Of a DNA stretch of 64,000 nucleotides, positions 3,150-43,804 are shown one piece after another (position 1 is the first letter of the stretch; each line of letters starts with the position of its first letter). The stretch lies in the sequence record NC_016571.1; one strand, given 5' to 3'. The translations under genes were made by a program, and so were the position numbers. The notes under the pieces are model-generated. The model made no database searches and had not been told where the DNA came from. It saw only the letters and a program-made list of their open reading frames with translations.

Positions 3150-6100
3150 TTAAGCGGATACTGATTGCTTAACCGTAGCAGGGTGATATACGTCACCAAT
3201 GACGTCAGTCTCGAAATCATCGGAAGGAGTTAAGGTTGCCGGGAGTATACGAACGTTGAGTGTTACGTCAGCGAAGTCACTACCCTCGATAGCGTTACCT
3301 GAATCCACGATAGCTTTAACTCTAACTGTGATGTCTTCAGTACCAACAACATCGCCAGTGTAAGTCAAGAGCAGACCATCGTCAGTTGCTTTCTCTACCT
3401 TGGTAACGGTGATAATACCTTTACCATCAATAGTAGCAATGTCGACAGTTGTATCAGGGTACAGTTTGCCATCACCAAAAGATCCGCCGATGTGAATCTG
3501 ACCGGTCTTACCTACAACTCCTACGCTGTCTTCGGCGACAGGTTTCAGGAGCTTACCGTTCCAACCCTTGACAGTGAACTTCACAGTTTGCTTCAAGGTT
3601 ACCAGGTCAATACCAGTACCATAGGTAACGGTAAATTCTGGCATCACGGTACTTTCTGCCGTGGCTGCATCGTAGACTTCCCAAGTGTTACCTTCGCCTT
3701 TACGTACGTAGCTATTGGCGGAGATCCCAGTGAGAGTACAATCAGCAGTAATATCATTTCCTTTGAACATTACTTTAAATGGCAGTTCGCCTTTATCCCA
3801 GATCTTAGCTACAACGTCTTGGACGTCAGTAATTTCTGGAGTCGCAGCTGGTTGCTGGGTCACTGACAGGTCAAACTTCCCACTATAAATAGGTGGAGTT
3901 TTCGCCGCTACTGTTGTTGATATAACAGTGTGAACCGCAGAATCGACATCTGCCAAGAATCTGACTTTAAAACTATCGACTTTACCAGAACCCGGCACAT
4001 ATTCGATAACCCCAGCTGGTAAGAACGTAATTCCATTTTTCGCTTCAGAGTAATCCAGCCTTGTGTTACTGGTGTAACCAATCACATTAACAGTAAGTTC
4101 GTCACCCAACTTACCAGTGACAGCATTAGGTCCCTCTATGAAGATGTATGCAGGGCTGCTGTATATACTTATCGGTACTCGTATTTTAGCCTGCTGTTTA
4201 GGATCGGTAGAGCCAGTTACCTTAGCTGTAACATCAATCCAAGAAGCAGCATGGGCATTCCTATTCGGAGTGAATTGGTAAATCAACGCCGGACCAGTAC
4301 CAGCATACACAGTAGGACCTGACATCGATCCTCCCTGACCTAACGCGACATGAGTTAATGAGGAAACAGGTTCTCCTTTATAGATACCGGCCACTCTCAA
4401 TGTTGCATTATTCCCACCGCCACTGGAAACCGCCATGGTGTTTCCGTTGTTTCCATCTCCGGTCACTCTCAAGACTAATTCAATTCCATCATACTTCCCG
4501 ATGTTGAACAGAACTTTTTGAGTCGGAGACTTCGTTACTTTACCGCTATTAACAGTAATGGTGTAGGTTACTTCCTCAGTCACTGCCTGTGTTTGATCAC
4601 CAGCAATAATCTTCCATGGCTTAGTGATTAGAGGACCAGCCTCAACACGGTTGTTAGGAGACACCACAGAAATACCAGTAATCCATTTAGCTGGAATCTC
4701 ATTACCACCAATCGCAGTTTTCACTTTGAATGGTAATTCAGTACCTTTATCCCAAACCTTCCCATCGATAGATTTAACATCAGTGACAATGAAGTTACCA
4801 TCCCAAGCTTTCAGATGGAACGTTACATCAGTACTGAGGTTAACTGCGGAAGCACCAGAAGGAACAGACACAGTCATCTTAACTACGACATCTGTATCAG
4901 CTGCTGGAGCATTCAGCACTTGCCATTTACCATCTACCAGACCAATGTAATCATTGGCTGAAATAGTGGTCAATGTCACAGTTGATGTTTTATCAACACC
5001 ATCTAAAGTCACTTTGAATGGCAGAGGTCCAGTATCACCCAGAGACGCGGTGACTTCCTGAACATCTTCTACTTCTGGGAAAGTGATGTTACTGATCTGA
5101 GTAGCAGCAACAGTGAACCATGCGAACTTATCTTCACCACCGACTTTACCAAACCCGATAAGAGCATCCTTGGTTATCTTAGGATCGGTAGTCAGCTCGC
5201 TTTCGAACCAAACGCTAATTTGGGTGGTAGTTACGTTGGCACCATTACTGGTGATCAACGGTCCTTTAACCCAGCTCGCACCACCATGTGTCAGGACAAC
5301 AGGGGTGAGTCCGTAGCGGATAGAGAATGCTAACGGATACTTCAGCGCATTGGTAGGTGAGTAACGACCTTCTACAGCAGTTGGTTGTACCACGTCAGTA
5401 CGAGGGTAATACTTGTCGGAATAATACACGTAGCAAGGGAGTTTAACCTTCACGTAGTCAACGTTCTCAACTGCGTTTGGATCATTCTCTTTGCTCAGTA
5501 ACCCGAACAGGAAATACCCGTCCTCGCTCGCCATCATATCCGTAGCGCCTGCTGTAGTGTACACAGGTTGGAATGACGGACTAGCTCCGGCTCCGGCACC
5601 TTGCAGTTTCAGGGTATGACCAGGCATGGTTATGTTTTTAGCCCAGACGCCGTACTTAACGCCTAGGTCAGCAGCGACCATTGCTCTGGTACGATAGGAC
5701 CCTTTAACGTAGAAAGTACCTTGAGCGCCAACGGTAGTAACCATCCCACCATTAAACGCATTAGGGGTATGGAGTTCAACCGCAAACTCTTTACCGTCAT
5801 ATGGCCTGATGGTAAACTGACTGGTTACCTCAAGAGTGACATCTTTAAATCCATCATTAAACACAGCAATAAACGTAACTGGCGTAACTACCCCAGCGGC
5901 CGTACCGTTGTATACTTCCCAGACGACAGTTCTAGGGTTTGCTGGATTATAATCAGGGTTTGTTCTGACATAATCATTTTGTTTAACGGTAACTGATTTG
6001 TACTGGTTTAGGGAGACAGCTTTACCGTTATGTTCAATATCGAACAGCGCGGCACCTATTTGCCAGACGTCAACAGTTGGATTCGTTATGTTCTTAGGTA

Positions 6101-9100
6101 TGGTGGTGTCACCAGCGCCTGTACCTTTAATGAGAACTTCCTGATCCCATTCGATAGTAGCGTTGATTAATCTAGCATTGTAATAAGGGAGATTCAATCT
6201 CATCTTAACAACAATGACTTGATCTTCACCACGGTTATCCGCAAGGATTTTAATTCTTGCAGTAGTGGGTGTTACTGGCGCAGCTGTTTTTAGTACCTCA
6301 ACCAAAGTTCCATTGGTAAGAACACTGAAACCAAATTGGTTACTCTGTGCTCCAGGCAAGCTGTTTCGCTCAATGTTGAGACCCATACTTAACGGAATAG
6401 GGATATCAACAATATCGTCCTTTTTACCTTCTACCTGTACAGGCGGAATGTTATCAGGGAACCAATACAGCTTCTCCTCATACCCCACCATTTCACTGGT
6501 TTCTTCAATGATTACCTTGTTCTTCTCAGGATCTGGATCAGCATCTGGTCCGGTATAATAAACCGGATACCGTACTTTACCAATAAACTGACTGATTACT
6601 TTAAAGGAGAATACACCCCAGTTAGCCGGGCTGTTAGACCCACGGGTAGCAAACTGCAAGCCTGGGTTCAATTGCTCGAACTCAGCTTTAGGAATATCCC
6701 ATGTTGACAGGTTATTCATACTAACACTTCTTCCCTTATATTCCAACAGCAGGGACATACCTCCTGTCTGGTTATAAGGAATTTGCCTATTGCCAACACC
6801 GCTAAAGTTAGTCACTACCAGATCTTTACCATCCCAAGCTTCGATGGTAAACGGAACCTCTGCTTCCATAGGGAATGAGCGAACACCGTCAGTGAATGTG
6901 AAGATATACTTCGCAGTCAGCTGCTTCTCAGTTGGATCTGCTTTCACACATGTCCAAAGAGCACTAGGGTCCTTTTTATACTCAAGGTATCCGTCTGATT
7001 CGAGAACGGCATCATTCATCCAACCAGTGGTATAGGTCGGGGTAATTACCTGACCCTGATAACTAACTTTAAATCCAGCAGCACCACCACTCTTATACAT
7101 CCTGGTAGTTTGCGGAGTTATCTCCACAATTTCGGGAACTGGATCAACACCACCAGTACCTTTGATCAATACCTTTTGATCATACTCAAGAGTATAGGTT
7201 CTCCCAGATACAGGAGACCATGACAAGCGAATAGGTAAGACAGTCTCAATATCGGAACCAGTGTTGTTATACGCGATTTTGATAGTGAAGAAGTCAAGAC
7301 CTTTATCGTTAGTGCCGGTGCTGATCGTAGCAAGTGCGGTATTCAGACTGGTGACAGTAAATGTCTCGCCAGCTGTGTTGCCCGCCATGTTGACTTGGAT
7401 TGCAGGACCGAACATTAAACCATTGGTAGGAACTTTAACCGATGCCTGATATGCACCTGAAACCTCAGCTGGAGGAAGATCATCTTTCCATGTCAACTTA
7501 GGATCAAAGGCAACATACTTGACAGGTATCTCGGCGGAGTTCTTTTTGTCGGTACCCAATGGATATCCGTTAATCGGAGACGTGTTAGCAGAGTTCCAAT
7601 TCCACTCTAACCCTAACTTACCAAGATGCTCCCCTACCTTGTTGGCTTTAAGCTGTGCGTTTACTGAAGTACCATTACCACCGCCTGACTTCCAAGTATA
7701 GATTCCATCAGACGTAGAGTTAATTTTACTTTGGTTAACAAGAGCCGATGCGTTAGATATAGGAGCGTTAGTAGCGACTAGTGTGTTAGGTACGTAATTT
7801 GCACCAAGTGCTCTCCCCACAAGAACGACGGAACCTGAATAACTATCAGCGGCGCTATAAGGGAATGCAATGATTAAATTACCATCTTGGTCGTATACCG
7901 CAGGTTTTGCTTGACCACCGACGTTCTGATGGAACGCCTGAAGCGTTTGGACTTCAATCTTGAATTGGATTTGGTCCCAAGCAACAGTGCTAACCTTCTG
8001 AACAACAGTTAGATCTTTAGTCCCATAACGGGCAGAAGTTCTAACTTTGAAGGTCAACTCAACTTCTGAATCTGCGACGTCACACTTAAGCAGTAACCAC
8101 GTAGGTCCGGCTGTCCAAGCTACACCACCCCAACTACCCGCTGAAGCGCCCGCAGTACCAACGTTCAGTTTGGCAACAGCCTCGGTATTTTCGTCACCAA
8201 TGATTCCATTAGGGCCTGCAACGGAAATCAAAGTAACGTCAGTGGCTGTAATGTCTACATCACCGGACATCACTTTAAATGGCAGGTTATAACGACGGAA
8301 GACCAGTTTCGGATCACCAGGGTTCGGAACAGTCTCCAACTCAGGAGTCATCGTTACAGCTGGCTTCACACGGTTTACAGCATCGCGACCTTCTTCAGCC
8401 GGTAAAAGCTCGGTATACCAAACAAAGTTCATCACACCGTTATAACTGAGTTTAGTCTTCAGTTTCAGGTAAGTGATTCCGGCGTCTACTCTCTGACCCA
8501 TGACTTCAAAGTACTTAGTCAATGGTTCATTAAGGTTAGCCGTCTTTGTCTCGTCTACTGCAAGGTAACCTGTCAAGTGAGGTTTGCCGTACAGAGCTAA
8601 TCCGAATGGAACTTCAAACTCCTCACCGACCTTCTTAGTAAGTTGAGTGAATGTATTCGGGGTACACGTAAATTGCGCAATCGGTCCCGGCCAGTTCCAG
8701 TTGGTATCAATAGCAGCCGTGCCATCCACCCAACCACCACGGAATGGTGCTTTGAAAGTGAATACGTGATCTTTGTAAGATCCGGCTGTGTCGCCTGGGG
8801 CTTTACCTATGATGAATAACTGGTTCTTTGATGTCGCTGGGAAATCTGGGTTCAGTATCATCCAACCGAACTGGTCTGGCGTAGGAGTCAGCGTGAGGAA
8901 TTGACATTGCTCACTAATATCAACGCCATTAGCTCTGATCCAGTTAGGGATCTTGACAGACTTATATAAGCTATCATAAATCGAGAAACCGCCAGATCTT
9001 GGCTGCCAGCGTGGATAGTCATCCGGGTCCTGAATCTGAACACGTTGTTCAGCAGTTCCTTTATGCACACGGTTAGTAGCCGGGTTGGTGTACACGAACT

Positions 9101-12100
9101 CCAACAGAGTTCCGAAGATCTCTTTTGGTTTATCCAGAGGAGCTGTGATCTCGTAGGTCATGTCAGTAGCAGAACGAGCAGTAATTCTGAAGATATCCTC
9201 ATTGGCCGGTGTAATGGTCAAATCAGGATCGTTCAGAGGGATGCTCTTACCAGATAACACAACACGGTTGTTACCTGAGCTACGGATGTCCTGGTTACCA
9301 GCTAAGATTGGGTTCGTCAGTCCAGTGATTACCAGTGGAGGTGTGACTATTTCCAAATCAAAGTTAACAACAGCATAGTCCAAATCAGCAACACCAGGAG
9401 TAGGTCCGCCAGCACGTCTGAACGTGATAGGGATCGTCTCTTTGCCAGGATCCAGAGCACGGCAGGTATAGGTAGTCGTAGTACCGTTAGTGGTAACGGA
9501 CTTAACTTCCATCAGCCCTTTCCAATCGGTTAATGTTTCATCGATCAGGTTAGTGGTCTGAATAGTGGCACGGTAGCGCTGACTAACGGTGAAAGTAAAA
9601 TCAGTATCAACGTTAGGGGTAGCTGGGTTACCTGCTGTGAATGCAACGCGGAATGTTCTTCCATCCCAAGGTTCAACCCACCAGAAGGTATCGATGTCAG
9701 CAGTGTACTCCCAGTTACGATACGTCGCGTAGAAACGGAACGGAACGACCTGGTTAGCAATACCACCTACTTCAGAACCTTCGACAGTACACTGACGAGT
9801 CAGCGTGTTGTCAATCCATACGTATTTGCCTTTACCCGTTTCGGTATAGTCGATACGCTGTAATGGATATGTGGTGTTAACAATAGTAGTATCAGCACAA
9901 GTCAGGATCGGAGAAACAACCTGTGAAGACCACATTGTCTTAGGTGTTACTGAGCTACCAAATGTGTTACCACTGAGCGCTGTCGGCTTAGGCGTCGTAT
10001 AGCTCATTGGAATTTCAATACGTCTGGTGTAGTTCGTACCACCAAATCTGTACGTCACATTTAAGAAGTCAGACACGTTAACAGTTTGGCCTGGAGCAAC
10101 TGGACCGAACAGTTCATAGTCGAATGAGTCAGCATGCCACGTTTTAGGATTCAGAACAAATGCGTTAGGCATTGTAGAGGCGCCAGTCTCACGAGTGATC
10201 GTCAGGTTCCCAGCAGCAATCTCTTTCTGAATATCCAAAGGTAACAGACCGAACAACAGTTCGAGTTTGTAAGTACCTGTGTCTTTGTGAGTCCCTGTTA
10301 ACAGGTTATCACGTTCACCTACTTCTAACGTCAGTTCACCCAGAACACGAGTATCAAGAGTTAACTCTACAACGTCACGTGGTTTAGGATTAGTACCGGC
10401 GTCAGGAGACCAGAAGACTACCTTAGTCTGAGCAACACCACCTTTCTTACCAGTAAAGGTAATCTCGTGGAGAATGCCATTGACGATAGCTTGCTTCACT
10501 TCCACTTGTGCTGGAATGGTTGACAGGTCTTGTTTAAAGGTAGCGCGAGAACCAACGTTCTGATCTTTATAGACAGGGCGGAAACTCAAGGTCACATCAG
10601 AGTCAATACCAGTTTCGATCTTACTCGGCGTGGCAATAACTTTAAACCGTACAGAGGTAGAGCCTGTGATGCGGAATGTGGCTTCAAATGCGATGACTTG
10701 CAGTTCAGCAACAGCGTCTACTTTATAGTAAGCGCGCATCGGAATGACTTGATTACCTGTGGTCGGTTCAGCACCAATGATTTCATAACCACGTGGTGGG
10801 GTCAGTTCCACATACCTGTTATCCGGGGTGACCAGTTCAAAGTGGTCAATGGCTACCGCTGATTCAGGTGTTTTAAGACCTTGCCAGAAGCTACCTTTAT
10901 CCCAGATGTTAACAGCATGGTAATCATCGTTGTTGGTTACTTCAACTTCACCCATGGTAATTTTGGCTGTGAAATTGAAAGATGCAGTCTTAGGTGTTGG
11001 AGCACCTACTTCGTACTCGATGTCGAGTACGAAGTTAAAGGTTTCAATACCACCAGGAACGTTGGAACGCTCACCTTTGATATAGATACCGTTAGAAGAC
11101 TTACCACCAACAGAAACGTAGTTATCACCTGCTCCATTCAGACCAGTGATTGTGTACTTCAAACCAGGGGCGTTCGCAGGGAGGTCATACTCACCATACT
11201 TCAGATTCAAAGTAAGGAGGTCGGTACCTTTCCAGAACATCTCTGTCTTATCACCATGATCGCCTAAGGTAAAGACTTCATCGCTTGAAACAGACTTGAC
11301 TGGAACTGTTAACGTTAACTGGTCCATGCCTTCCACTGGAGTAGCTCCAGCAGTTGCCATTTTAAATACAAACTTAGCAGTGTCTTCTGCTTGACCTACC
11401 AGGGTGTAAGTTACCTTACCAGTCTCTGGGTCATACGGAAGAACAGCCAGGTTCTTTGGAATCACAGTGTTGGTGTCATCAAGGACTGATTCAGTATACG
11501 GCTTACCTTTGTAAGTAAACTCGAACTGAAGGTCACCCGCCATACCAGCTTTACCATCTAACTTCAATGGTGCAACTTCACCTTTATAGTCAATACCGTC
11601 GAACTTAGCGATATCGAACAACACAGATGCGTCAATGGTTCTTCTTAAACCACCATTGTCATAAGTCAGCGTTAATGGTAATGACGCCTCGATTGGTTGG
11701 GTTTTGGAACCCTGAACAACGTACCAACCTTGTGGTTCTTCAAATGCAATATAAGGACTCGTACCACGTGGAACGTATTCCTGAATCTCCACGTTAAGAC
11801 CACGTTCATCGGCCAGACGAATTTTAATATCGCCATAGTCGTAAACGTTAACGTTCTCAACTGGGTTACGTTGAATCTCTACACGAGAGATACGAATCGT
11901 CCCAACCTGATCAAGAACTACGGTCTGCGGCTGACCAGTACCAACATCATTCCAAACGAGAGTGATCGTTGTCGGATACGTGTAGTCAGTGTCTTCATCC
12001 CCGCCTGCATCGAGAGAAAGCAGCAGTGATTCACCACGCATTTCAACTACGGAGATCGGATCAGCATCACCAGCATCGAAAGTAACTGACAGATTAGCGT

Positions 12101-15100
12101 TAGTCAATTCGATTGGAGAGCCAGAGACATTGAGCACCAATGGATATTCGATTTGATCTTTGTAGAAGCCCTTAAACGTTTCTGGAGCTGTTACAACGTT
12201 CAGACCATCTGGCCACTGTACTTTAGTGGTGATAGGTGCTGAGATTGTTTCAGAGCCTTCTGTACGTTTAAACACCAGGTTCATCGGATATTCCCCACCA
12301 CGAGTAGTAGTGTAGTTAATCACGAAACCTTTACCTTCCACAAACATACCGTTATCTAACAGTTTGATTGTTTCAGGAATGGTGCTAGAAGCTAATACAA
12401 GTTCGATCTTGTCGGTTACGTCGTTACCTTTATATACAAAGTTGGCAACAATTTCACCACCTTCAGATGACTTAACATCGATGGCTTTTGGATCGTAATC
12501 AATACCGAAGGTAATCTGATCCCACTCGGCTAAGTTAAAGACAGCATCTGTCATGAACTCGCCTTTAGATTCACCAACTTCCCAGGTGATCTTTAAAGGA
12601 ACAGTAGTGGTGATAGCAGTTTTCTCAGCCCAAGTAACAGACCAGTTATAACGGTTCACACTGATGTAGGTATTGCCACCAGGGACAGTTACTGTTCTAG
12701 TTCCCGTTGTCCAGTCTTTCGTACCAGCCATAAGCTTGATAGGGAAAGAACCGGTATCCCAGATCTTGGCATCGATAGGTTGCTTATCGTATTCCAGTCT
12801 CAGAGGAGGGAAGGTAATCAGTGCAGGCATGATCAAGACTTGCTTGAACGTGTTGACTGGATTCAGTGGATCGGTATACTCAATGGTCAGTTCTGTACCG
12901 ACGTTATAAGTACGACCTACGAAACGCCACAGGTTGTCAATGACACGCAGGTGATCTTCTTCACGAGAAATAATCTCAACGTCAGAGACTTTAGTTTTGG
13001 TAATCTTCAGAATAGGATCGTTCAGAGGAACGTTAACACCTGCGAATTCAAATACAGGTTTGAACTGTCCTTCCTCTTCTACATTCATAGCCAAATTAGT
13101 TGGCCACTCAATTACCTTGAATGTACGAGCCTGTTCAATCACTGCACTAAACAGAACAACACCACGCTGCTCAGGTGCGGGTACCAGGATTTCCTTCTTA
13201 GCAAATGCGTAGCGGCCAGCGCCAGTACCTGCCTTCATCTTGGTATAGTCAAGTTCGAGATTACCAGTGGCATCATTGAACTTCAGCGCATTGAACTTCA
13301 GTTGTTCTGGAACAGAAGAGTTAGCGTCAACAATTCCGACCAGTTCTGAAATATCAACACCTTCTTCGAAGACCTTGAATTCCAGTTTGCCTTTCTCATC
13401 TGTTTTACCTGTGATGGAGAAACTAGATGGAACAGCAACAACCAGGGTGTTCTCGCCATCTTCCCCGCCACCACCTTGAGTATACTTTCTAACAACAAAG
13501 TCTTGCTCAAATGTAAAGCGAGTGTTAACGCCATCAATTACTACGAAGAACTCAAACTCAACTTTGACAGGTGTGTCTTCTGTCTTACTGGCCTGAAGCA
13601 CACGCCAGGTGTTGGGAGCTTTAGGTTCATTATAGATGTATCCGTTATCACCAACAACGGCCAGGTTCTTAACCAGTTCAGTTTGGTTCTCGCCATTCAA
13701 CATAAAGGTGAATGTAGTCTTACCAGTCTGGTAACGGTCAACGAACAGTGGTGTTGGACCTGGGACAACTTCATAGACAGAACGACGTTTGACTTCAACG
13801 TTGATCGTGTATTCCGGAGCATAGCGAACACCACGAGGGTCAACCCACGTTAATGTCTGTCTAAAGCTATCCAGAATAGATTGGCCGTCTATATCAGAAT
13901 CGCGTAACAGTTTGAAACGCACACCTTCATCGGTTACTTCGAGGAACTCGATTAAGCGTTTATCACCTTTGACTCCAAGTTTAATACCCAGTTCTTTAGG
14001 TGATACTACTTGAGGTTCTTCTTCATCAGGTAATCCGTAAACTGCCTGGATGATCATCAGACCTTCTTCGTCTTTATAGCCACGAAGTGAAGTCATGATG
14101 CTGGTAACACGGAAGGAAGGTTTGACTTCTGGTTTAACAACGATCATGTTCACAAAAGCCGGAGCTTTATAAAGTGTTCCTGAATCGCTGTACTGGAAGT
14201 CAGCACGATACAGCTCAGTATCTTTATCCCAGTTCACTGGTAGATTACCGGTGATTGCACCACGGTAAGTCATAGAGCCATCTGGTAGAGTCTCGACATA
14301 AGCCAAGTTACCATATTTCTTCTTAGACTCAAATTCAGTAGCTGGGATGTTCAGAGTAACTGGATTACCCTGGAAGAACGCCTGAACGTTAACTTCAACC
14401 ACGTCACCTTTAGATGCAGTGATCTCGGCAGGAGTCACCACAAAGGTCAAATCCAACTGTTCATCTTTCTCGATGATAACTTTGATACGGAAAGTCTTCT
14501 TAACCGGACGACCCATGTACATGTGAGTAACACGTACCACGATGAAGTCAGTCACTTCCTTATCAGTCGCACCGAAGATCGTTTCACCCTCAATGGACAG
14601 TTTGTCATCAGAACGTCTCGGAATGGTGTAACCCGAATCAGTAGTGATGTCAACCTGAGCAGTCATGGTGATATCTTCTACACCACCGAACCAATAGGTG
14701 TTCGGGATGTTGAAGTCTTTACCACGGCTAGAGGTGATTTCGGTTGGGAGGTTAGATGTAATCTCAGGGAGCATCGCTTCGGCTTTAACCAGTTCATAAA
14801 TGAACAGCGGGAATTCACCCATACCGAATGCCGGATCAGTTACCTTAACCGTACCGGATTCTAACGTATCGTAATCGATAGAGGTCAGAGACTCACGAGT
14901 AGAAGTATAGGTATTAAAGAACAGCCCACCGAAAGCTTTTTGCATGCCAGACATGGTCTTGGCGTTTTCTTGGTTGAGCAGAACACCGTAAGTATTCTTA
15001 TAAGTCAACCAAAGCAGTGTAGCTTCAACATCATCGTTTGCTTTAGCATATGCTTTAAGTTCGTCAACATCATTGATCTCAACAAAAGGAACAGCGAAGT

Positions 15101-15389
15101 CCTCAAGGATCTCTTTAATGGTAACGCGTTTAACTTCAACGTCAGCACGAGCAAAGCCAGTCTTACGAGATACGATACAAACACGGACGATACCATCCGG
15201 AAATGAGATTGGGTCTTCAATAACAAGATCACCCGCAATCAAACCGGTGTAACGTTGCCGAGCAAGTTCTAACTCGTCATTAGGATCATCGATCTCAAGG
15301 TCAGCAATACGCTGCTTCAGATATTTGATCACAGGAGTGAATAAAGGATCTTTAATCACTTTACTGTTGGTTCTTGTAATAATCGCCAT
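3150..15389 (-). CDS. 4079-aa giant virion fibre/adhesin-like protein: N-terminal anchor domain plus many ~100-aa beta-sandwich repeats
   Basis: Uninterrupted 12.2 kb ORF with phage codon usage. Recurrent motifs (kiWdkGxlPFkV..G.DiT; F.i..WDG; P..i.Gk.g; Yv....W.v) in a V/T/G/P-rich beta composition. Function is inferred. Confidence 0.85.
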   Translation of the reverse strand: MAIITRTNSKVIKDPLFTPVIKYLKQRIADLEIDDPNDELELARQRYTGLIAGDLVIEDPISFPDGIVRVCIVSRKTGFARADVEVKRVTIKEILEDFAVPFVEINDVDELKAYAKANDDVEATLLWLTYKNTYGVLLNQENAKTMSGMQKAFGGLFFNTYTSTRESLTSIDYDTLESGTVKVTDPAFGMGEFPLFIYELVKAEAMLPEITSNLPTEITSSRGKDFNIPNTYWFGGVEDITMTAQVDITTDSGYTIPRRSDDKLSIEGETIFGATDKEVTDFIVVRVTHMYMGRPVKKTFRIKVIIEKDEQLDLTFVVTPAEITASKGDVVEVNVQAFFQGNPVTLNIPATEFESKKKYGNLAYVETLPDGSMTYRGAITGNLPVNWDKDTELYRADFQYSDSGTLYKAPAFVNMIVVKPEVKPSFRVTSIMTSLRGYKDEEGLMIIQAVYGLPDEEEPQVVSPKELGIKLGVKGDKRLIEFLEVTDEGVRFKLLRDSDIDGQSILDSFRQTLTWVDPRGVRYAPEYTINVEVKRRSVYEVVPGPTPLFVDRYQTGKTTFTFMLNGENQTELVKNLAVVGDNGYIYNEPKAPNTWRVLQASKTEDTPVKVEFEFFVVIDGVNTRFTFEQDFVVRKYTQGGGGEDGENTLVVAVPSSFSITGKTDEKGKLEFKVFEEGVDISELVGIVDANSSVPEQLKFNALKFNDATGNLELDYTKMKAGTGAGRYAFAKKEILVPAPEQRGVVLFSAVIEQARTFKVIEWPTNLAMNVEEEGQFKPVFEFAGVNVPLNDPILKITKTKVSDVEIISREEDHLRVIDNLWRFVGRTYNVGTELTIEYTDPLNPVNTFKQVLIMPALITFPPLRLEYDKQPIDAKIWDTGSFPIKLMAGTKDWTTGTRTVTVPGGNTYISVNRYNWSVTWAEKTAITTTVPLKITWEVGESKGEFMTDAVFNLAEWDQITFGIDYDPKAIDVKSSEGGEIVANFVYKGNDVTDKIELVLASSTIPETIKLLDNGMFVEGKGFVINYTTTRGGEYPMNLVFKRTEGSETISAPITTKVQWPDGLNVVTAPETFKGFYKDQIEYPLVLNVSGSPIELTNANLSVTFDAGDADPISVVEMRGESLLLSLDAGGDEDTDYTYPTTITLVWNDVGTGQPQTVVLDQVGTIRISRVEIQRNPVENVNVYDYGDIKIRLADERGLNVEIQEYVPRGTSPYIAFEEPQGWYVVQGSKTQPIEASLPLTLTYDNGGLRRTIDASVLFDIAKFDGIDYKGEVAPLKLDGKAGMAGDLQFEFTYKGKPYTESVLDDTNTVIPKNLAVLPYDPETGKVTYTLVGQAEDTAKFVFKMATAGATPVEGMDQLTLTVPVKSVSSDEVFTLGDHGDKTEMFWKGTDLLTLNLKYGEYDLPANAPGLKYTITGLNGAGDNYVSVGGKSSNGIYIKGERSNVPGGIETFNFVLDIEYEVGAPTPKTASFNFTAKITMGEVEVTNNDDYHAVNIWDKGSFWQGLKTPESAVAIDHFELVTPDNRYVELTPPRGYEIIGAEPTTGNQVIPMRAYYKVDAVAELQVIAFEATFRITGSTSVRFKVIATPSKIETGIDSDVTLSFRPVYKDQNVGSRATFKQDLSTIPAQVEVKQAIVNGILHEITFTGKKGGVAQTKVVFWSPDAGTNPKPRDVVELTLDTRVLGELTLEVGERDNLLTGTHKDTGTYKLELLFGLLPLDIQKEIAAGNLTITRETGASTMPNAFVLNPKTWHADSFDYELFGPVAPGQTVNVSDFLNVTYRFGGTNYTRRIEIPMSYTTPKPTALSGNTFGSSVTPKTMWSSQVVSPILTCADTTIVNTTYPLQRIDYTETGKGKYVWIDNTLTRQCTVEGSEVGGIANQVVPFRFYATYRNWEYTADIDTFWWVEPWDGRTFRVAFTAGNPATPNVDTDFTFTVSQRYRATIQTTNLIDETLTDWKGLMEVKSVTTNGTTTTYTCRALDPGKETIPITFRRAGGPTPGVADLDYAVVNFDLEIVTPPLVITGLTNPILAGNQDIRSSGNNRVVLSGKSIPLNDPDLTITPANEDIFRITARSATDMTYEITAPLDKPKEIFGTLLEFVYTNPATNRVHKGTAEQRVQIQDPDDYPRWQPRSGGFSIYDSLYKSVKIPNWIRANGVDISEQCQFLTLTPTPDQFGWMILNPDFPATSKNQLFIIGKAPGDTAGSYKDHVFTFKAPFRGGWVDGTAAIDTNWNWPGPIAQFTCTPNTFTQLTKKVGEEFEVPFGLALYGKPHLTGYLAVDETKTANLNEPLTKYFEVMGQRVDAGITYLKLKTKLSYNGVMNFVWYTELLPAEEGRDAVNRVKPAVTMTPELETVPNPGDPKLVFRRYNLPFKVMSGDVDITATDVTLISVAGPNGIIGDENTEAVAKLNVGTAGASAGSWGGVAWTAGPTWLLLKCDVADSEVELTFKVRTSARYGTKDLTVVQKVSTVAWDQIQFKIEVQTLQAFHQNVGGQAKPAVYDQDGNLIIAFPYSAADSYSGSVVLVGRALGANYVPNTLVATNAPISNASALVNQSKINSTSDGIYTWKSGGGNGTSVNAQLKANKVGEHLGKLGLEWNWNSANTSPINGYPLGTDKKNSAEIPVKYVAFDPKLTWKDDLPPAEVSGAYQASVKVPTNGLMFGPAIQVNMAGNTAGETFTVTSLNTALATISTGTNDKGLDFFTIKIAYNNTGSDIETVLPIRLSWSPVSGRTYTLEYDQKVLIKGTGGVDPVPEIVEITPQTTRMYKSGGAAGFKVSYQGQVITPTYTTGWMNDAVLESDGYLEYKKDPSALWTCVKADPTEKQLTAKYIFTFTDGVRSFPMEAEVPFTIEAWDGKDLVVTNFSGVGNRQIPYNQTGGMSLLLEYKGRSVSMNNLSTWDIPKAEFEQLNPGLQFATRGSNSPANWGVFSFKVISQFIGKVRYPVYYTGPDADPDPEKNKVIIEETSEMVGYEEKLYWFPDNIPPVQVEGKKDDIVDIPIPLSMGLNIERNSLPGAQSNQFGFSVLTNGTLVEVLKTAAPVTPTTARIKILADNRGEDQVIVVKMRLNLPYYNARLINATIEWDQEVLIKGTGAGDTTIPKNITNPTVDVWQIGAALFDIEHNGKAVSLNQYKSVTVKQNDYVRTNPDYNPANPRTVVWEVYNGTAAGVVTPVTFIAVFNDGFKDVTLEVTSQFTIRPYDGKEFAVELHTPNAFNGGMVTTVGAQGTFYVKGSYRTRAMVAADLGVKYGVWAKNITMPGHTLKLQGAGAGASPSFQPVYTTAGATDMMASEDGYFLFGLLSKENDPNAVENVDYVKVKLPCYVYYSDKYYPRTDVVQPTAVEGRYSPTNALKYPLAFSIRYGLTPVVLTHGGASWVKGPLITSNGANVTTTQISVWFESELTTDPKITKDALIGFGKVGGEDKFAWFTVAATQISNITFPEVEDVQEVTASLGDTGPLPFKVTLDGVDKTSTVTLTTISANDYIGLVDGKWQVLNAPAADTDVVVKMTVSVPSGASAVNLSTDVTFHLKAWDGNFIVTDVKSIDGKVWDKGTELPFKVKTAIGGNEIPAKWITGISVVSPNNRVEAGPLITKPWKIIAGDQTQAVTEEVTYTITVNSGKVTKSPTQKVLFNIGKYDGIELVLRVTGDGNNGNTMAVSSGGGNNATLRVAGIYKGEPVSSLTHVALGQGGSMSGPTVYAGTGPALIYQFTPNRNAHAASWIDVTAKVTGSTDPKQQAKIRVPISIYSSPAYIFIEGPNAVTGKLGDELTVNVIGYTSNTRLDYSEAKNGITFLPAGVIEYVPGSGKVDSFKVRFLADVDSAVHTVISTTVAAKTPPIYSGKFDLSVTQQPAATPEITDVQDVVAKIWDKGELPFKVMFKGNDITADCTLTGISANSYVRKGEGNTWEVYDAATAESTVMPEFTVTYGTGIDLVTLKQTVKFTVKGWNGKLLKPVAEDSVGVVGKTGQIHIGGSFGDGKLYPDTTVDIATIDGKGIITVTKVEKATDDGLLLTYTGDVVGTEDITVRVKAIVDSGNAIEGSDFADVTLNVRILPATLTPSDDFETDVIGDVYHPATVKQSVSA

Positions 15390-15508: not shown

Positions 15509-18500
15509 TTACACTTTTAATTTAAGCGTGGTTGGTTTATTAGCCTTACCAGATCGCACTTCAAGTTGAACTTCGAACTCAACCGGATGAGGGGGTGGGT
15601 ACTTAACTATCTTAATCGTTAATGTACGAGCCACAGAGTTAGATGAAACAGTCAGTCCAGCAAATGTACCAGACTGAGTAATGACCTTCCCAGAAACGTC
15701 CTCAGGTCCAATCTGAGTACCTTCATAAGTCGCTGGATAAACGTACACAACTTCGGTATCGGTTATCTGAACTTTAGGTGTTCCTAACACAAGACGGTTG
15801 TACGGTTTATTGATTCCGTAAACAATCACGTCTGCTTCATAACTAACACCGTCTTTGCTAATACCGCGAACTTTATGATGGACATCTTGTTTGTCATTCA
15901 GGAAGACGATAAACTCACCGTAAACCAGATTGGTAACAGGATCGATAGCCAGCTTACCTTTAGCCAATCTTACATCCTTGGAGGCAGTCCATATTACATC
16001 GCTAAGTTCATTACCCATATTGGTCCAGTATATTCTCAGGACATCCGTCTTAGGGATTATCTCGGAATATACTTGTTGGGTATAACCAACGTTATCTGTG
16101 TTAGCATAACCGGATCTCAGAATAACTTGGTTAGGTGCGCCTTCGATGCTCAGAGCGATATCAAATAGAATAGCTTCGGCATCCACACCAACCTTCTGAT
16201 TAAGTTTTAGAGTATCGCCAATTTGGACCAAATCAATAGGTTCCACTTTAGCTTTCTCACCACCAAACAGATAGTTGATCTTTTCGATCTTAGCAACACC
16301 CACTGAATTACCACGGGTATTCTTCAAGTCATAAGTAAATTCGAATGACCGAGTCGCATTATCCCATACTGGTTTCTTTGTGACCTCAACTGAAAACTTT
16401 GGTTCTTGAGGGGCCGAGCTCTCAATTACACCATCGAAAGAGATAGGGTAAACAGTAGTGTCCGGAGTAGGGAGCATGAATACGTTATTACCTGCGTAAT
16501 ACATATCCTTGCCACGGTTAATTACGGCAGGGAACTTAATGGTGAGTTCATTGCCCACTTGGTTCCACGATGCTACTGGTTCACCAGGAAGGTTATTCAC
16601 TTGCTCTTTCCAGATGCGCTGATTCATACTAATGTATTCAGCAGGAATAGAAGACCAGTCGCCAATCACCCAAGTAACTTCCAATGGTCTAGCTAGATCG
16701 TCACCTATCTTCATGCTTTTGAATTCAGCACGACCAGGAACATTATACTGCTCTTTAAATTCCAGAGTCAGTGTGTTCTTCTGGTCAACGATAAGTGATA
16801 ACGCTCCTTCGAGCACCTGAGATTTCAGTGGGTCATCCAGACGAATACGAATAGCGAAGGTTTTAAGTTCATCCACTGCGCGCATACTGACCAGTGTAGC
16901 GCCAGGGATATTAACATCGCCCAAGGTTACACTTTTGCTTTCACCTAGGTCATGTCTAACCACGCCAACACATATTTCTGTGTATCGGGTGCCCGACAAA
17001 ACAGGATGTGCTAAACCAGCATATTCTAATTCAGCCTCAAACTTAGGCTCTTGTTTGAATTCTACCGTAGCAAGTTTATCAGAGAAGTCAGTGACGTTAG
17101 TATCAGCAAAGCGAATATCAAGGGAGTAGTTACTTCCTGACCAATCCAGCTTACCTAACTCAACGGTCATTGTCACAGCGCCATTCTTAAATGCAAAATC
17201 AGAATAGTTGCGGATTCCCTTGTGTGGATAAATCTCTTCCACGCTCACTACGTCGGTGATGTTAGCTGTGGGCATCCCATCCGGAGTACGCAAACCGAAT
17301 GACAGCCTTACCCTATTACCATCTAACAGTTCAGATTTAACACCCGATACTAAATAAGGGTAGAAGTCAGAACCTATGGTAACATTGGTCTTAACTGACA
17401 TCGGAGGTAATCCATAATCAGGGGTATTGATCAGAGCTGTAAATTCAAACTCGTCTTTCATACCGCTTGGGATAACGTCAACGTAATAAGTCAGATTACC
17501 CTCTTCACTAGAGTACTCCCACTTTTTGACTAACACTCTTCCATTAGGGGTTGAGACTTCATTAGCCATTGTTACGTTGATTGGGTGCGTTCCATCTTCC
17601 CACTGTAGCTTGGTTGTTACGCCAAGAGTATTGTCATTGACCAGCTTAGACATCACTGGGGTAGAAGTTAATTCACCCTCACCGGGTTTCAGGAATAGCT
17701 CAACCTCATCGCTGAAAATAATAGAGCGACAGTTATCAGAAGCAAAAACAAGTCGACCACCGAGAAGTTTCTTAACAGGTCTAAGAGTACGAGCCGCCCC
17801 TCTGAACGTAATCTTAACCACGTTCGCACCAAGATGTTCGAGTTCTGTTTCATACTGAGAACCTTTATTCTCGGCAAGTTTAACTGTGCCGATTGGGTAC
17901 CCTCTTGAAAGTATGAGGGTCTCAACAACATCAGCTGTTTTGATTTCAGTGGCGATCGAATCGATAGCGAGGGATTTCAACACTACTTTCATATCGTAAA
18001 GGAAATCATTTCCTCTAAAGCTATAAATACCTAATGCTGAGAATTCGACATCACGACTATCATCTTGGCGGACATTCCACTGAAGGACTGTCTTGCCTTC
18101 TACAGATTTAACTGATGGAGATAAGATATCTCCCAGACCACGTGAAGTGAATGCATTACGCTGGTAATCATTCAACAGCGAAATAGGAACATTCAGTCCA
18201 GTTTCATCCGAAGTAACTGTAATCGGCAGATTGATTGTTTCGCCTTTAAAGAAAGGGGTACCGTACGCAATCTTACATTTTACTTGCTTAGGTGGGATCT
18301 GAACCAGCAGGCTAACAAAGTGAGGATCGAACTCATCGGCTGTGACTAACATACCCAGCTCATAATCCATTTTAATTAGATTATTTTCATTCACTTTAAT
18401 AGATGCACGAAGATCACCAGTAAGAGGATTGTAATCCACTTTAGAGACCTTAACAGAACCACTTGGTACATTGGTAGCCGATTTCAGAGTAAGCGGTATA

Positions 18501-19267: not shown

Positions 19268-19348
19268 ACCAGCTCCTGGAGTAAAGAATCGTCTAAGGAC
19301 GGACATAGAATCTGAGAGCCACAGCCCCCAGATTCTAGTTGTAGTCTT

Positions 19349-21484: not shown

Positions 21485-21566
21485 CTTTACAACTCCAGAT
21501 TGGTTGTTGGTTACCCAAGGGGCATAGGATCCTCCCACACCCCGTTAGGGATGCAGGAGGCTATGG

Positions 21567-29221: not shown

Positions 29222-29230
29222 ACAAACATA

Positions 29231-29262
29231 AACTCTACTCACCCATTTGGGTGAGTAGAGTT
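29231..29262. terminator. Bidirectional terminator hairpin (CTAC/GTAG family)
   Basis: 14-bp perfect stem AACTCTACTCACCC-attt-GGGTGAGTAGAGTT between convergent genes. Confidence 0.85.
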
Positions 29263-29288
29263 GTTAACATATATGTTTTATTTTGGTT

Positions 29289-29891: not shown

Positions 29892-29973
29892 GAGTCATTA
29901 CCTATAGGTGAAAATTAAAACGATTGGATATCCAAACGATTCAACCGTTATTTAATTTGTAATAAATTACAAG

Positions 29974-29994
29974 CAGATATTATCCTTATGTAGA
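29974..29994 (+). promoter_or_regulatory. Putative early promoter, copy 2
   Basis: CAGATATTATCCTTATGTAGA. Confidence 0.65.
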
Positions 29995-30026
29995 CAATAT
30001 TAATGAAGTTAATAGAGGATTAAAAT

Positions 30027-30464
30027 ATGGCTGTTCTGATTGATGGGATTACTTTGGATGTTGATCAACTTAGACGCATACAGATGTTGTACGGTTCAAT
30101 CGAAAAGATGAAGACCTATCCTTTCTGGATTGAGTGCCAACAGAAACATAAGTATTTAACTGACTTGATTGAGAACATCAAGATAGGTCGCCAAATGGAA
30201 AAAGATAATACTCCTCGTTGGAATATTTTATCGCGTTGGATAGTGAGTCCATTAGGTACCTGGGGGATGAATAAATTTATCATCCCTCGTATTGAGAAAC
30301 TCAAAGAAAAATATCAAACCCTACTCACCCTTCCAGCTGGGTTTGCTGTCTCCGCCGCCAATGAAGAGTTCGATAAGTTCATTGAAGAACTCGGTAATTT
30401 CATTGCTGTCACTAACAAAATAACTGGAATTAAGGACGACCCTTATGTCAAACCAAAAGCTTGA
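30027..30464 (+). CDS. Hypothetical protein
   Basis: GAGGA RBS; first gene after the promoter. Confidence 0.75.
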   Translation: MAVLIDGITLDVDQLRRIQMLYGSIEKMKTYPFWIECQQKHKYLTDLIENIKIGRQMEKDNTPRWNILSRWIVSPLGTWGMNKFIIPRIEKLKEKYQTLLTLPAGFAVSAANEEFDKFIEELGNFIAVTNKITGIKDDPYVKPKA

Positions 30465-30855
30465 TTTATCTAAACCATTTGTAGCTGATCGTTCAGAAAT
30501 TGCAGCTGATGTGATTAGCGATCTTTGTAACCATATCGAACACGCCCAGAGCATTTTCAAACTGGCTCCAATTTTTCATATTGGTAAGTTCTTCTCATCT
30601 CTCGGAATGAAACTGGATATTAAGAAGGCTGTCTCTGTTTCTTACCAGCTGCGCGAAATCAAGTTATGGTTGGCGGATGGCCAGAGAAGTAAAGACTTCA
30701 GTGATACACATGAATTATTATGTGAACTGAATGACCTCCTGGAAGAGAATAAGGAACTTCTGATCAGGGTGTTCGAGCCAGTTGCCATCGACTGTAATTT
30801 ACGGGTTGATGGGACAGAGTTATTTAACGCAACAACTTATGGAGGGCAGATATGA
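30445..30855 (+). CDS. Hypothetical protein
   Basis: AAGGA RBS; overlaps its neighbours. Confidence 0.7.
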   Translation: MSNQKLDLSKPFVADRSEIAADVISDLCNHIEHAQSIFKLAPIFHIGKFFSSLGMKLDIKKAVSVSYQLREIKLWLADGQRSKDFSDTHELLCELNDLLEENKELLIRVFEPVAIDCNLRVDGTELFNATTYGGQI

Positions 30856-31406
30856 ATACACTTTTCTGGGCCGATGGTCATGTTGATCATTTAGCAGCAG
30901 CGAAACGTAGAGGGTTTGAAACTCTTCGTGAATTCCAGGAGAAGTTTGCTGATGGGTGGTGTAGCAAGGCAAACAAGAACTCTATCGTCTACTGTGTGGG
31001 TGATATGGCTCTCTTCCATGAGGGATTAGTTTTCCTCAAGAAGTTACCTGGTAAGAAGATCTTGGTTATGGGCAACCATGACACCGAGCGTCAAAACGAT
31101 ACTCGCGATCTGTTAGAAGTTTATGATGAACTCGCTGGGTTCCATAAACATAAGAAGTCCCCATTGTACATCGGACATTGTCCAAGTCACCCGTCCCAGT
31201 TACGTGGCCGACTAATGGTACATGGGCATACTCATACGGACATTATTCCGGATGAGCGATACGTTAACGTCTGTTGGGATTTACTCCAAGACGGCCCCGT
31301 ATCGATTGAAGATATTGTGTCCGGGAAATATAAGTCCTGGCGTAAACCCGATTTATTTAAGGAGCATCAGCACCATGATAAAGTTCATCGACCGAATGTT
31401 AACTAG
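30852..31406 (+). CDS. Calcineurin-like metallophosphoesterase
   Basis: DGH, VGD, GNHD, H and HGHTH motifs in canonical order. Confidence 0.9.
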   Translation: MNTLFWADGHVDHLAAAKRRGFETLREFQEKFADGWCSKANKNSIVYCVGDMALFHEGLVFLKKLPGKKILVMGNHDTERQNDTRDLLEVYDELAGFHKHKKSPLYIGHCPSHPSQLRGRLMVHGHTHTDIIPDERYVNVCWDLLQDGPVSIEDIVSGKYKSWRKPDLFKEHQHHDKVHRPNVN

Positions 31407-31584
31407 CCTATATATCTATAGCACTGCATTCTGGTTTATCTCTCTGGGTTTGCACATCTTTAAGCCAAGCCCTAAAACATCAACTTTCTTCTTTGATGTC
31501 GCTGCACCAGTGACGTTAAGTGTGGTGGCTATCGCTATGTGTCACTGGGCTTACCATTACCGGAAACTGTTGAAAGGTAGTTAA
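31375..31584 (+). CDS. Small 2-TM membrane protein
   Basis: AAGGAG RBS before MIKFIDR (start corrected from 31222). Confidence 0.65.
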   Translation: MIKFIDRMLTSLYIYSTAFWFISLGLHIFKPSPKTSTFFFDVAAPVTLSVVAIAMCHWAYHYRKLLKGS

Positions 31585-31812
31585 ATGTTCATGCGCTTAA
31601 TGAAGTTGACCTACATCCTGTTAATACTTATGTTTGTGGGTCACTGGATTTATCTGAACGTTGGAACCATGGATGAGGAATTCCGTGGGTTTTTATTTAA
31701 GGTAAATGTAATACTAGGAATTGCTATTGCTTACCTAACCTACGCATTCATTATGAATAGCGTAGAAACAACCATCCAAACTGAAGAAGAGGATTTTCAT
31801 GAAAACTCGTAA
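31585..31812 (+). CDS. Small 2-TM membrane protein
   Basis: Two hydrophobic helices and an acidic tail. Confidence 0.7.
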   Translation: MFMRLMKLTYILLILMFVGHWIYLNVGTMDEEFRGFLFKVNVILGIAIAYLTYAFIMNSVETTIQTEEEDFHENS

Positions 31813-32044
31813 CGGCGAAACCGGTATCTCTAAACGTTTCAAGTGGATCTCCGGTATTTACACGGTAATCATCATTGCCATCATTCTGTACATCCTGGCT
31901 GCCGATTGGTTGAACTATGCGGCTAACCCTACACTGATCAAATACCATGACAACCTTTTGTTCCCACTTTGGGTACTGATGGTCGGTTATGAGTTCGGTG
32001 TGCGTCGCACCTACAAAAAGCTAACCGCCCGATGGAAACATTAA
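31799..32044 (+). CDS. Small 2-TM membrane protein
   Basis: GAGGA RBS; two hydrophobic helices. Confidence 0.7.
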   Translation: MKTRNGETGISKRFKWISGIYTVIIIAIILYILAADWLNYAANPTLIKYHDNLLFPLWVLMVGYEFGVRRTYKKLTARWKH

Positions 32045-41406: not shown

Positions 41407-41423
41407 ACAAGGGCAGGACTTGC

Positions 41424-42067: not shown

Positions 42068-42097
42068 GAACATAAACTATTTACTTGGAGATATATC

Positions 42098-42496: not shown

Positions 42497-42502
42497 TAGA
42501 AC

Positions 42503-42522
42503 TGGCTACCTTCGGGTAGCCA
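42503..42522 (+). terminator. Terminator hairpin (CTAC/GTAG family)
   Basis: TGGCTACC-ttcg-GGTAGCCA followed by a long T tract. Confidence 0.8.
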
Positions 42523-42562
42523 ACTTCTTATTCTTATTTTTTTTTCTGTTCAAAGGTGCAAC

Positions 42563-42853
42563 ATGAAGATATCACATAAGTTAAGGGTGCTAATCTTATT
42601 GTTGGGTTTGGGAGTTACTTTTGTTGTATTAGGTAAAACAATCAAGCGTCATTATACTGATGCCCAGCTGATGCAACATTGTATTAACGTAAACAAAGGA
42701 GACATACTTCCCTACCCTGAAGGATGTATGAAACCTATTCGGATAAAGAACGACATATTCGAATTCATTAACGTTAATGGGCAAAAGGAAATGTATGTTG
42801 TTATAAAAATGAGAGATAGTACATTTCGTTATGCCAAGGTAAGAAATTCATAA
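42563..42853 (+). CDS. N-terminally membrane-anchored protein
   Basis: Basic N-terminus and a single TM helix, then a soluble domain with 2 Cys. Confidence 0.65.
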   Translation: MKISHKLRVLILLLGLGVTFVVLGKTIKRHYTDAQLMQHCINVNKGDILPYPEGCMKPIRIKNDIFEFINVNGQKEMYVVIKMRDSTFRYAKVRNS

Positions 42854-42914
42854 TTATCCTATGAAAGGTAATTTAAGCAGTTCCACTTTCTTTGCAATCA
42901 TGGAAATATAAACA

Positions 42915-43804
42915 ATGCCAACTTTGAAAACTCCTTTTCAGTACCTGCTTGATCTGACCGGTGCGTCTCGCATCAAAGCAGCTAAAGCAACTGGTGATGC
43001 AGCTGCTATCGCCAAAGCTGAACGTTTCTATCTGGGTCTGGATGAATCTGAATGTGAGTTCACTACTCCATGGCAGAATCCACTGGCCGGTAACAAATGG
43101 CAGGTTGATGTCACCGTTCGTACTCGTGGCTTCAAAATCCCTGGCCTGCGTTTCAACACCGGTACCCTGTCTCCAATGATCCGTCCTGGTGCAAACATCA
43201 TGGCTAACAAATCCTCTCTGGATCTGTCTACCGTGACTGGACTGTATCACGTTTATGAAAGTGATGCTGATCACCTGCTGATTCACCCGAACAGCAATAT
43301 CTACGAAGCCCTGAAAATGACCGGCTTTGTATTTGACACTTCTGCCTTTGAAGTGACCTGGTATCCAGAACGTGATAAAGATCAGAAAGCTGATGGCTAC
43401 GTTGATGTTAAACATCCGGTAGTTGCAGGTCGTCTGTTCCTGTCAGTAGTTCAGCGTGAAGTCTCTGGCGCACCTAACGTTCCTCCAGTTCTCCCGACTG
43501 ATGCTAAAAACATCATTGAAGGCAAGTCTGAAGAAACCGAGGTCCAGTTGGTGAAGGCATCCAGCTTCAAACCGTAGTCACTCAGGAAGGTGAAACCCTC
43601 CCTCCAGTCGATGAAAGCGTTGATGCTGAAACAGCTGCTATCCAGGCACTGTTGAATGAAGACAGCAAAAACGAAACCACTAAGCTGGCTGAAGACGCTG
43701 CGGACAAATCTGTAGCTGCTCAAGAAGCTGCTAAAGTTGTTCCTGCTCCTGCTCAGGAAGAAGCTCCGGCTGAAGCTCCTGTACAGCAGAAGAAAAAGAA
43801 ATAA
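42915..43804 (+). CDS. Putative virion protein, distant anchor-domain paralog; frame 0 stops at 43577 and a -1 frame continues as an Ala/Glu-rich tail to 43804
   Basis: RFYLGL..P..G...V.VR..GF weakly matches the anchor motif. The -1 frame GPVGEGIQLQTVVTQEG...APAEAPVQQKKKK has typical phage codon usage and ends just before a terminator. Confidence 0.65.

Follow-up and report, generated by a model that had tools for sequence, protein, structure and literature searches.

The 64,000-nucleotide (nt) stretch analysed here (the window, within which positions are counted unless another record is named) covers record positions 186001-250000 of Pseudomonas phage OBP (NC_016571.1), as placed by the 100% identity of 28000-32000 with OBP 214000-218000, and contains four genes that share an N-terminal domain of about 200 amino acids (aa), which we refer to as the head domain. 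The largest, gp207 (OBP_207; 3150-15389, minus strand), is annotated and also recovered as an open reading frame (ORF) of 4079 aa. Its head (residues ~1-205; 14775-15389, minus strand) was delimited by BLASTP to gp226 and by the family hidden Markov model (HMM), and is followed directly by a giant repeat cargo (3150-14774, minus strand). The protein gp209 (OBP_209; 19349-21484, minus strand) has 711 aa when read from its annotated ATG (a mechanical ORF list uses an upstream GTG, giving 729 aa) and consists of a head (residues ~1-205; 20870-21484, minus strand) and an all-beta cargo of ~505 aa. The 200-aa gp226 (OBP_226; 29289-29891, minus strand) is a head domain without cargo, and the 220-aa gp252 (OBP_252; 42915-43577, plus strand) is a remote and nearly cargo-less relative. 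All four are listed as 'hypothetical protein' in the depositors' record and in RefSeq. The N-terminal motifs and coordinates quoted for them in a first-pass annotation of this DNA are all present in the sequence, and the cargo range that it gave is right: none, a short tail, ~505 aa and ~3875 aa. OBP carries genes for a nuclear shell protein and for the tubulin PhuZ, and is thus a nucleus-forming jumbo phage.

Pairwise BLASTP, run over all 399 stop-to-stop ORFs of the window, bears out the earlier claim that the N-termini of gp207, gp209 and gp226 are homologous (E-values 6e-35 to 1e-13). The gp207 N-terminus matches gp226 with 34% identity over 204 aa (E 6e-35) and gp209 with 28% identity (E 1e-20), gp226 and gp209 are 25% identical (E 1e-13), and besides these three no ORF of the window matches a head under E 0.1. 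The family HMM recognises the gp207 head at E 1e-79. The neighbouring giants gp205, gp206 and gp208 gave no head domain in HMM searches. Two proteins in OBP, gp207 and gp209, carry both head and cargo; the shared head proposed for 'several' fibre proteins stands, with the number of cargo-bearing proteins in this genome reduced to two.

The relationship of gp252 to the other heads is more distant. It has no BLAST match to them, and an HMM built from the three heads alone reaches it only at E 5. A profile of gp252 and six relatives aligns with the 26-member family profile at an hhalign probability of 96.4% (E 1.3e-9) over 161 collinear columns, and with a 76-member profile at 95.7% (E 9e-9) over 175 columns. 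In a search of 1227 ORFs of the OBP genome with the 76-member HMM, gp252 ranked fourth (E 1.6e-3; reciprocal search 0.022). The weak match that had been noted for the protein starting at 42915 is real, and the profile comparisons confirm gp252, at the level of sequence, as a member of the family. The same search of the 1227 ORFs returned these four OBP genes and no further head-domain gene.

A profile of the three OBP heads was then scored against 1.84 billion representative proteins. It matches 76 protein clusters, 64 of them at E 1e-10 or better, and in 75 of the 76 the head occupies residues ~1-200, with total lengths running from ~140 to 5283 aa. About 25 are stand-alone proteins of 138-226 aa, a few have 355-535 aa, about 17 have 678-1095 aa, six have 1346-2174 aa, and about 20 are giants of 2412-5283 aa. 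In a phage collection, queries with gp226, the gp207 head and the gp209 head each returned an identical set of 33 records representing ~20 phages, every one of them an OBP-like or an Aeromonas jumbo phage; the family is restricted to this single clade. The OBP-like carriers are OBP, Kc263, N1M2, AH04, Yubaba and Sureiya, SXP01, Survivor and pEt-SU, and the Aeromonas carriers are PS1, PS2, CF8, AVP1, ACP1, pAEv1810, AhC3_1, AerS_266, ZPAH34, D3, D6, D9 and LAh10. Each record has the head domain in 2-4 places (2-5 copies), and a gp252-type gene is present as a single copy in every one of the 33. Throughout these records, members of the family are annotated as 'hypothetical' or, doubtfully, as 'adhesin'.

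The giants of eight OBP-like phages begin with sequence that is 60-64% identical to the gp207 head, and gp207 orthologues in relatives have 3308-5283 aa. Gene order is also conserved: nrdB, sometimes with a ferredoxin gene, is followed by head-bearing genes and then by more giant genes. The number of cargo-bearing members varies from one in N1M2 and AerS_266 to two in OBP and Survivor, and Aeromonas phage D3 has four consecutive head-bearing genes encoding 678, 1077, 2794 and 1077 aa. The D3 nrdB (L007:4146-5455) is annotated as two pieces with a small ORF between them, which may mean an intervening element. Based on a neighbour-joining tree, the heads fall into a giant lineage (including Aeromonas proteins of ~1060 aa), the gp226 group, a second stand-alone group, the gp209 group and a mixed clade. 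Cargo-less and cargo-bearing heads interleave in this tree, so cargo was gained or lost several times. The modular logic proposed in the first-pass annotation, a common head with variable cargo, agrees with the near-universal N-terminal position of the domain, with a cargo that ranges from nothing to over 5000 aa, with the tandem head genes of D3, with the mixture of both forms in the tree and with the likeness of the cargo to elongated adhesin-type material, described below.

The stand-alone gene gp226 is a single minus-strand gene within a plus-strand block of small and nucleotide-metabolism genes. In all four relatives examined (N1M2, Kc263, Survivor and AerS_266) the stand-alone gene likewise lies alone on the opposite strand in this same neighbourhood. 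Immediately after the gp226 stop codon in OBP there is a strong terminator-like hairpin (29231-29262, minus strand), with a stem of 14 base pairs and a T-rich tail, between the convergent genes gp225 and gp226. gp226 forms a separate transcription unit. OBP-like phages conserve the protein at 52-64% identity, and it can still be recognised in most of the Aeromonas relatives; thus, it is not a decayed fragment. Since this identity across phages exceeds the 34% between gp226 and gp207 of the same genome, the duplication that separated stand-alone from cargo-bearing heads must be old.

The AlphaFold model of gp226, computed from a 26-sequence alignment, is a compact mixed alpha/beta domain with a predicted local distance difference test (pLDDT) score of 94.2 and a predicted template-modelling score (pTM) of 0.85, uncertain solely in the first ~10 residues. 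The gp209 model (pLDDT 78.9) shows the same alpha/beta head followed by beta-sandwiches, so that the predicted folds of the two heads agree (template-modelling (TM) score 0.88 in BFVD). Significant fold matches in BFVD are exclusively jumbo-phage proteins. They comprise family members such as gp209, a 220-aa entry that we presume, by its length alone, to be gp252 (TM 0.68, E 4e-10), and proteins of the Erwinia phages RisingSun and Joad. A Foldseek search of the gp226 model against 350,542 PDB chains gave nothing significant (best E 0.1, all TM <0.25). The best-conserved stretch in the 26-sequence alignment spans gp226 residues 41-85 and includes R46, Y47, D54, I57, E58, G66, C71, F72, R75, G78, F79 and D83; D83 occurs in all 26 sequences and E58 in 25.

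Sequence searches of Pfam, PHROGs and the PDB with gp207, gp208, gp209, gp226, ten mid-length relatives and two family profiles were of no use: gp207, gp209 and gp226 have no counterpart in either Pfam or PHROGs, and gp207 matches no PDB sequence either. The exceptions in these searches are phrog_27694 for gp252, and Invasin_D4 and Big_1 in P0030, a family member of 2119 aa.

The nature of the cargo emerges from different lines of evidence in different members. Foldseek places the gp209 cargo next to immunoglobulin (Ig)-like arrays, with titin I65-I70, protocadherins, an Aeromonas RTX-adhesin repeat and S-layer proteins as top matches. In Pfam, P0030 shows Invasin_D4 three times (9e-32) and Big_1 once (4e-9), and gp205 has a sub-threshold match to Invasin_D3. 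The gp207 cargo is rich in T, V and G, and its repeats are invisible to plain BLAST self-comparison. When a profile of twelve gp207 orthologues was compared with itself, off-diagonal alignments appeared at shifts of ~327, 650, 950, 1260 and 1580 columns, with E-values down to 2e-101. These begin at about column 233; gp207 thus consists of the head and about eleven super-repeats of ~325 residues. Tandem beta-sandwiches are indicated by fold in gp209 and by Pfam in P0030, and in gp207 solely by the super-repeats together with the composition. By profile, the distal part of gp207 also has a marginal match (E 0.034; positions ~2979-3072 in alignment A5) to 2w3j, a carbohydrate-binding module of solved structure.

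The head-bearing giants stand in a cluster whose other members lack the head and exchange pieces with it. Among them are gp208 (OBP_208; 15509-19267, minus strand; 1252 aa) and gp206 (OBP_206; 1-3116, minus strand; 1859 aa), the C-terminal part of which extends past the left end of the window. gp206 lies 33 nt downstream of gp207 in the same frame, and its residues 4-599 align to residues 3257-3854 of the 5283-aa giant P0009, where the two form one polypeptide. The giant genes have therefore apparently been split or fused at different points in different phages. gp205 and gp206 open with a common unit of ~80 aa that is 47% identical between them (window 1-3149, minus strand; L002:10699-19117) and that is internal in the giants of other phages, at about residue 3200-3340. 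We considered whether this N-terminus, which contains 'NKDP', could be a short version of the head, which has 'KDP', and rejected it on an hhalign probability below 1%; it is an internal repeat unit of fused giants. At the other end, gp204 and gp205 (L002:9973-13518) share a C-terminal module of ~120 aa, which also closes the giants P0004 and P0012 and may be a common distal tip. Residues 28-152 of gp208 are found as cargo in the head-bearing P0030 of another phage, and both gp208-like and gp209-like pieces serve as cargo behind heads in other phages. Cargo pieces are exchanged in mosaic fashion among gp203-209 and their relatives. In N1M2, a Klebsiella phage, the gene for a giant of 3375 aa (N1M2_162) is in frame with the gene that follows it, N1M2_161 (L005:20001-34769). 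A gp206-like alignment spans the unannotated 625-nt gap between them, and the two genes look like one fused frame with at least one in-frame stop.

In the relatives, the gp252-type gene is a single gene of 260-308 aa. The C-terminal part of their profile matches a separate downstream ORF of OBP in another frame (E 2.7e-16), so that OBP_252 and OBP_253 together (42915-43804, plus strand) are the counterpart of one gene, broken once by a frameshift in the OBP record. This frameshift may be genuine or programmed, or may stem from an error in sequencing. gp252 matches the N-terminus of phrog_27694, which has 1420 columns. An ORF of 180 aa antisense to gp252 (42873-43415, minus strand) is without support and probably spurious. 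A terminator-like hairpin followed by YTATG occurs 30-60 nt before the start of the OBP internal-head-protein genes and of gp203, gp208, gp209 and gp252 (window 19268-19348, 21485-21566 and 42800-42914; OBP record 92600-100300), and is absent at gp226 and gp207. It may be a late-promoter arrangement, with TATG too frequent by chance to carry weight.

Based on these observations, our preferred reading, to which we give a probability of roughly 0.55, is that the OBP head is a lineage-specific N-terminal attachment module, most plausibly on the virion, that carries exchangeable adhesin-like cargo. The head would hold the protein on a fixed partner, for which the virion surface is the most plausible candidate, and the Ig-like or beta-sandwich repeats behind it would form long, flexible, adhesin-like strings that make reversible contacts with the host surface. 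With about eleven super-repeats in a single chain, gp207 could reach the order of 100 nm or more, assuming the typical size of Ig domains. The cargo-less gp226 and gp252 would be conserved structural partners that share this fold and sit at the same site or next to it; the capping of empty sites or tuning of fibre stoichiometry, suggested for gp226 in the first-pass annotation, is one of several possible roles.

The closest published parallel is DUF7941 (PF25613), which has the same layout. A paper on phage Goslar of November 2026 describes it as a chimallivirus-specific module that occurs either in high-copy stand-alone proteins or N-terminal to carbohydrate-binding, glycoside-hydrolase or leucine-rich-repeat cargo (PMC13742148). 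DUF7941 forms head-to-tail filaments, is placed at the peripheral baseplate and is proposed to be the virion tether of flexible filaments; the proteins named are gp22, gp23, gp86, gp92 and gp161 of Goslar and gp126, gp127 and gp143 of phiKZ (PMC13742148). By analogy, the OBP heads might likewise sit at the baseplate periphery, and a collar or capsid site would also be possible.

Several observations count against placing the heads on the virion as attachment modules. No solved virion protein, those of the phiKZ atlas included, matches the head fold in the Foldseek search of the PDB. In the literature covered, which did not include the OBP genome and proteome paper, we found no virion proteome or structure for phages of the OBP clade. 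The depositors labelled many OBP genes 'putative virion structural protein', but gp203-209, gp226 and gp252 were left as hypothetical. Electron microscopy of the relative N1M2 showed no tail fibres. The surroundings of gp226 and gp252 are metabolism genes that look early, and the giants come after nrdB and a ferredoxin gene, all on one strand. Catalysis would be another possible meaning of the invariant acidic and basic residues in the head. Furthermore, a gp226-type copy is not evident in the group of D3, D6, D9 and LAh10, and thus the gp226 type is not universally required.

An unlikely alternative, although one that the parallel with DUF7941 brings to mind, is that the head self-associates head-to-tail, so that gp226 and gp252 would be the abundant backbone of a long filament and gp207 and gp209 its decorated subunits, in place of a plug that fits a virion site one to one. 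The architecture is that of DUF7941, whose stand-alone paralogues are the high-copy filament formers (PMC13742148), and the low-complexity tail of the gp252 type resembles Goslar gp23. The first ~12 residues of the head are conserved yet modelled with low confidence (pLDDT 65 and 33), as might be expected of an arm that docks onto a neighbour. There are also faint fold hints towards phiKZ gp127 (9xqd_0) and the PhiPA3 orthologue of gp143, but these are non-significant (E 0.45 and 0.037; TM 0.22-0.30), PF25613 gives no match at E 10, and hhalign probabilities stay below 1%. Moreover, the gp226 type is without the linker and the C-terminal domain that mediate polymerisation in DUF7941. The head could instead assist folding or assembly, as an intramolecular chaperone or a targeting pro-piece, and then be removed or stay behind, with the stand-alone copies acting as assembly chaperones in trans and absent from mature particles. 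We regard this as very unlikely: fibre chaperone domains are usually C-terminal, whereas an N-terminal position with free variation of the cargo is the usual signature of an anchor, and the linker behind the head is invariant in the giant lineage, with no conserved protease-type motif by inspection. The reasons for entertaining a chaperone at all are that the cargo-less genes stand among non-structural genes near a phage GroEL and a ClpP-like gene, that OBP has a head maturation protease, and that gp203-209, gp226 and gp252 are without structural annotation.

There is equally little probability, in our judgement, in a role away from the virion, with the head an enzyme or binding domain in or on the infected cell and the giants secreted or cell-associated adhesins. 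The invariant D83 and the near-invariant E58, R46, Y47 and R75, the novel fold and a genomic position adjoining nucleotide-metabolism genes speak for such a role. Against it, no enzyme family was matched in Pfam, NCBI-style names, PHROGs or the PDB, and no signal peptide or membrane segment was noticed in the N-termini, judged by eye alone. The fold relatives in RisingSun are annotated as structural, and Ig-like arrays of phage proteins are typically exposed on the virion.

A more speculative extension of the attachment reading, and a distinctly improbable one, is that these genes give nucleus-forming jumbo phages a second system of virion filaments, which would be separate from DUF7941 or have diverged too far from it for kinship to be recognised. 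The paralogous heads would co-assemble as a mixed oligomeric anchor in which a single-chain Ig-like tentacle, up to ~5000 residues long, extends from one subunit and the gp226 and gp252 types fill the other positions. Such an anchor would explain the co-occurrence of the long type and the gp252 type in every one of the 33 records, and the presence of the gp226 type in most of them. If true, there would be one filament per site, which would reconcile a string that is monomeric with an attachment site that is symmetric.

Recognising the family opens a way into the largest genes of the clade, of up to 5283 codons, and under the attachment reading it marks a likely host-adhesion apparatus separate from ordinary tailspikes. 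The head, a confidently predicted fold without a solved relative, is a good target for structure determination. The head-domain family is undescribed; the principle of its design is already known from other systems.

Tail-fibre and tailspike anchors share with the OBP heads a conserved N-terminus, an exchangeable distal part and the presence of several such proteins per genome. In Aeromonas phage AerS_266, the authors noted that the tailspikes share their N-termini and inferred attachment through them (PMC10673249). These tailspikes, gp1, gp2, gp5 and gp6 (L023:45-9588), have a common N-terminus of ~60 aa and pectin-lyase-like or glycosidase cargo. We rejected this N-terminus as a form of the OBP head domain: it is a shorter module and does not match the family HMM. 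AerS_266 additionally encodes a head-bearing 'adhesin' of 1066 aa and a stand-alone head, so that one phage carries both systems. The OBP family differs from tailspikes in having strings of Ig-like repeats instead of trimeric beta-helix enzymes, and its conserved cargo-less copies are unusual for tailspike or fibre anchors.

In its use of an anchor with an outward string of Ig-like or Big domains, the OBP family resembles the decoration proteins T4 Hoc and T5 pb10 and the bacterial invasin/intimin or RTX adhesins. The Invasin_D4 and Big_1 domains of P0030 and the likeness of gp209 to an RTX adhesin and titin tie the cargo to these Ig-array adhesins. The OBP cargo is 10-40 times longer, and the head has no fold match to the solved anchors of decoration proteins among the PDB matches listed, all of which have E >= 0.1.

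An arrangement of stand-alone and cargo-bearing copies is also found in Erwinia phage RisingSun, of the EL-like group, where gp197-gp210 (L022:1-13757) are fourteen paralogous genes built from two interleaved modules. The N-terminal module of ~160-190 aa stands alone in gp205 and gp206 of that phage and bears cargo in its gp197, gp201 and gp207; the annotation of gp197 and gp201 reads putative virion structural protein. RisingSun gp197 matches the gp226 model in BFVD (Foldseek TM 0.53, E 1e-5), and the link to the OBP heads by profile is marginal (hhalign E 0.01-0.016, probability 3-4%). Judged from the models, with marginal sequence and profile support, the RisingSun module is a remote fold relative of the OBP head. 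Unlike the OBP giants, the cargo in the RisingSun array is short, at a few hundred residues.

With DUF7941, the OBP heads have in common several paralogues per genome, in stand-alone and cargo-bearing forms, in nucleus-forming jumbo phages, a status that was checked in OBP itself through the nuclear shell protein and PhuZ. The shared layout led us to test whether the OBP heads are members of DUF7941. PF25613 found none of 26 family members even at E 10. As controls, it recognised phiKZ gp126 (4e-9) and gp127 (1e-27) above its gathering score of 27 bits, and phiKZ gp143 fell under that score (18.3 bits, E 2e-3). hhalign gave a probability of 0.1% for the family profile A2 against phiKZ gp127 and of 0.6% for the 76-member profile against a six-sequence gp143 family. 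Searches of OBP by phmmer and jackhmmer with phiKZ gp126, gp127 and gp143 returned nothing, a test too weak to exclude DUF7941, and searches for further gp127 relatives brought up phiKZ-type copies only. By fold, chain 0 of 9xqd (phiKZ gp127) is the sole phage chain among the top 50 PDB matches of the gp226 model, at rank 46 of 350,542 and non-significant (E 0.45, TM 0.22/0.27), and the PhiPA3 gp143 orthologue in BFVD is a similarly faint match (E 0.037, TM 0.27/0.30). On sequence and profile grounds, that is by PF25613 and by hhalign probabilities below 1%, we rejected membership of the OBP heads in DUF7941.

The two families also differ in how they are built and in the evidence for their location. 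The OBP head is a compact domain of 200 aa, without the linker and C-terminal domain that DUF7941 uses in head-to-tail assembly. DUF7941 is tied to the virion by phiKZ gp127, which was modelled in the outer baseplate, and by the 201phi2-1 orthologue of gp143, a virion protein proven by mass spectrometry. The OBP family thus resembles DUF7941 in architecture, with no demonstrable relationship to it by sequence, profile or fold. The 'stand-alone plus cargo-bearing' design of DUF7941 recurs here with an unrelated-looking fold, and this recurrence is relevant to the way in which jumbo phages assemble large and exchangeable structures for host recognition.

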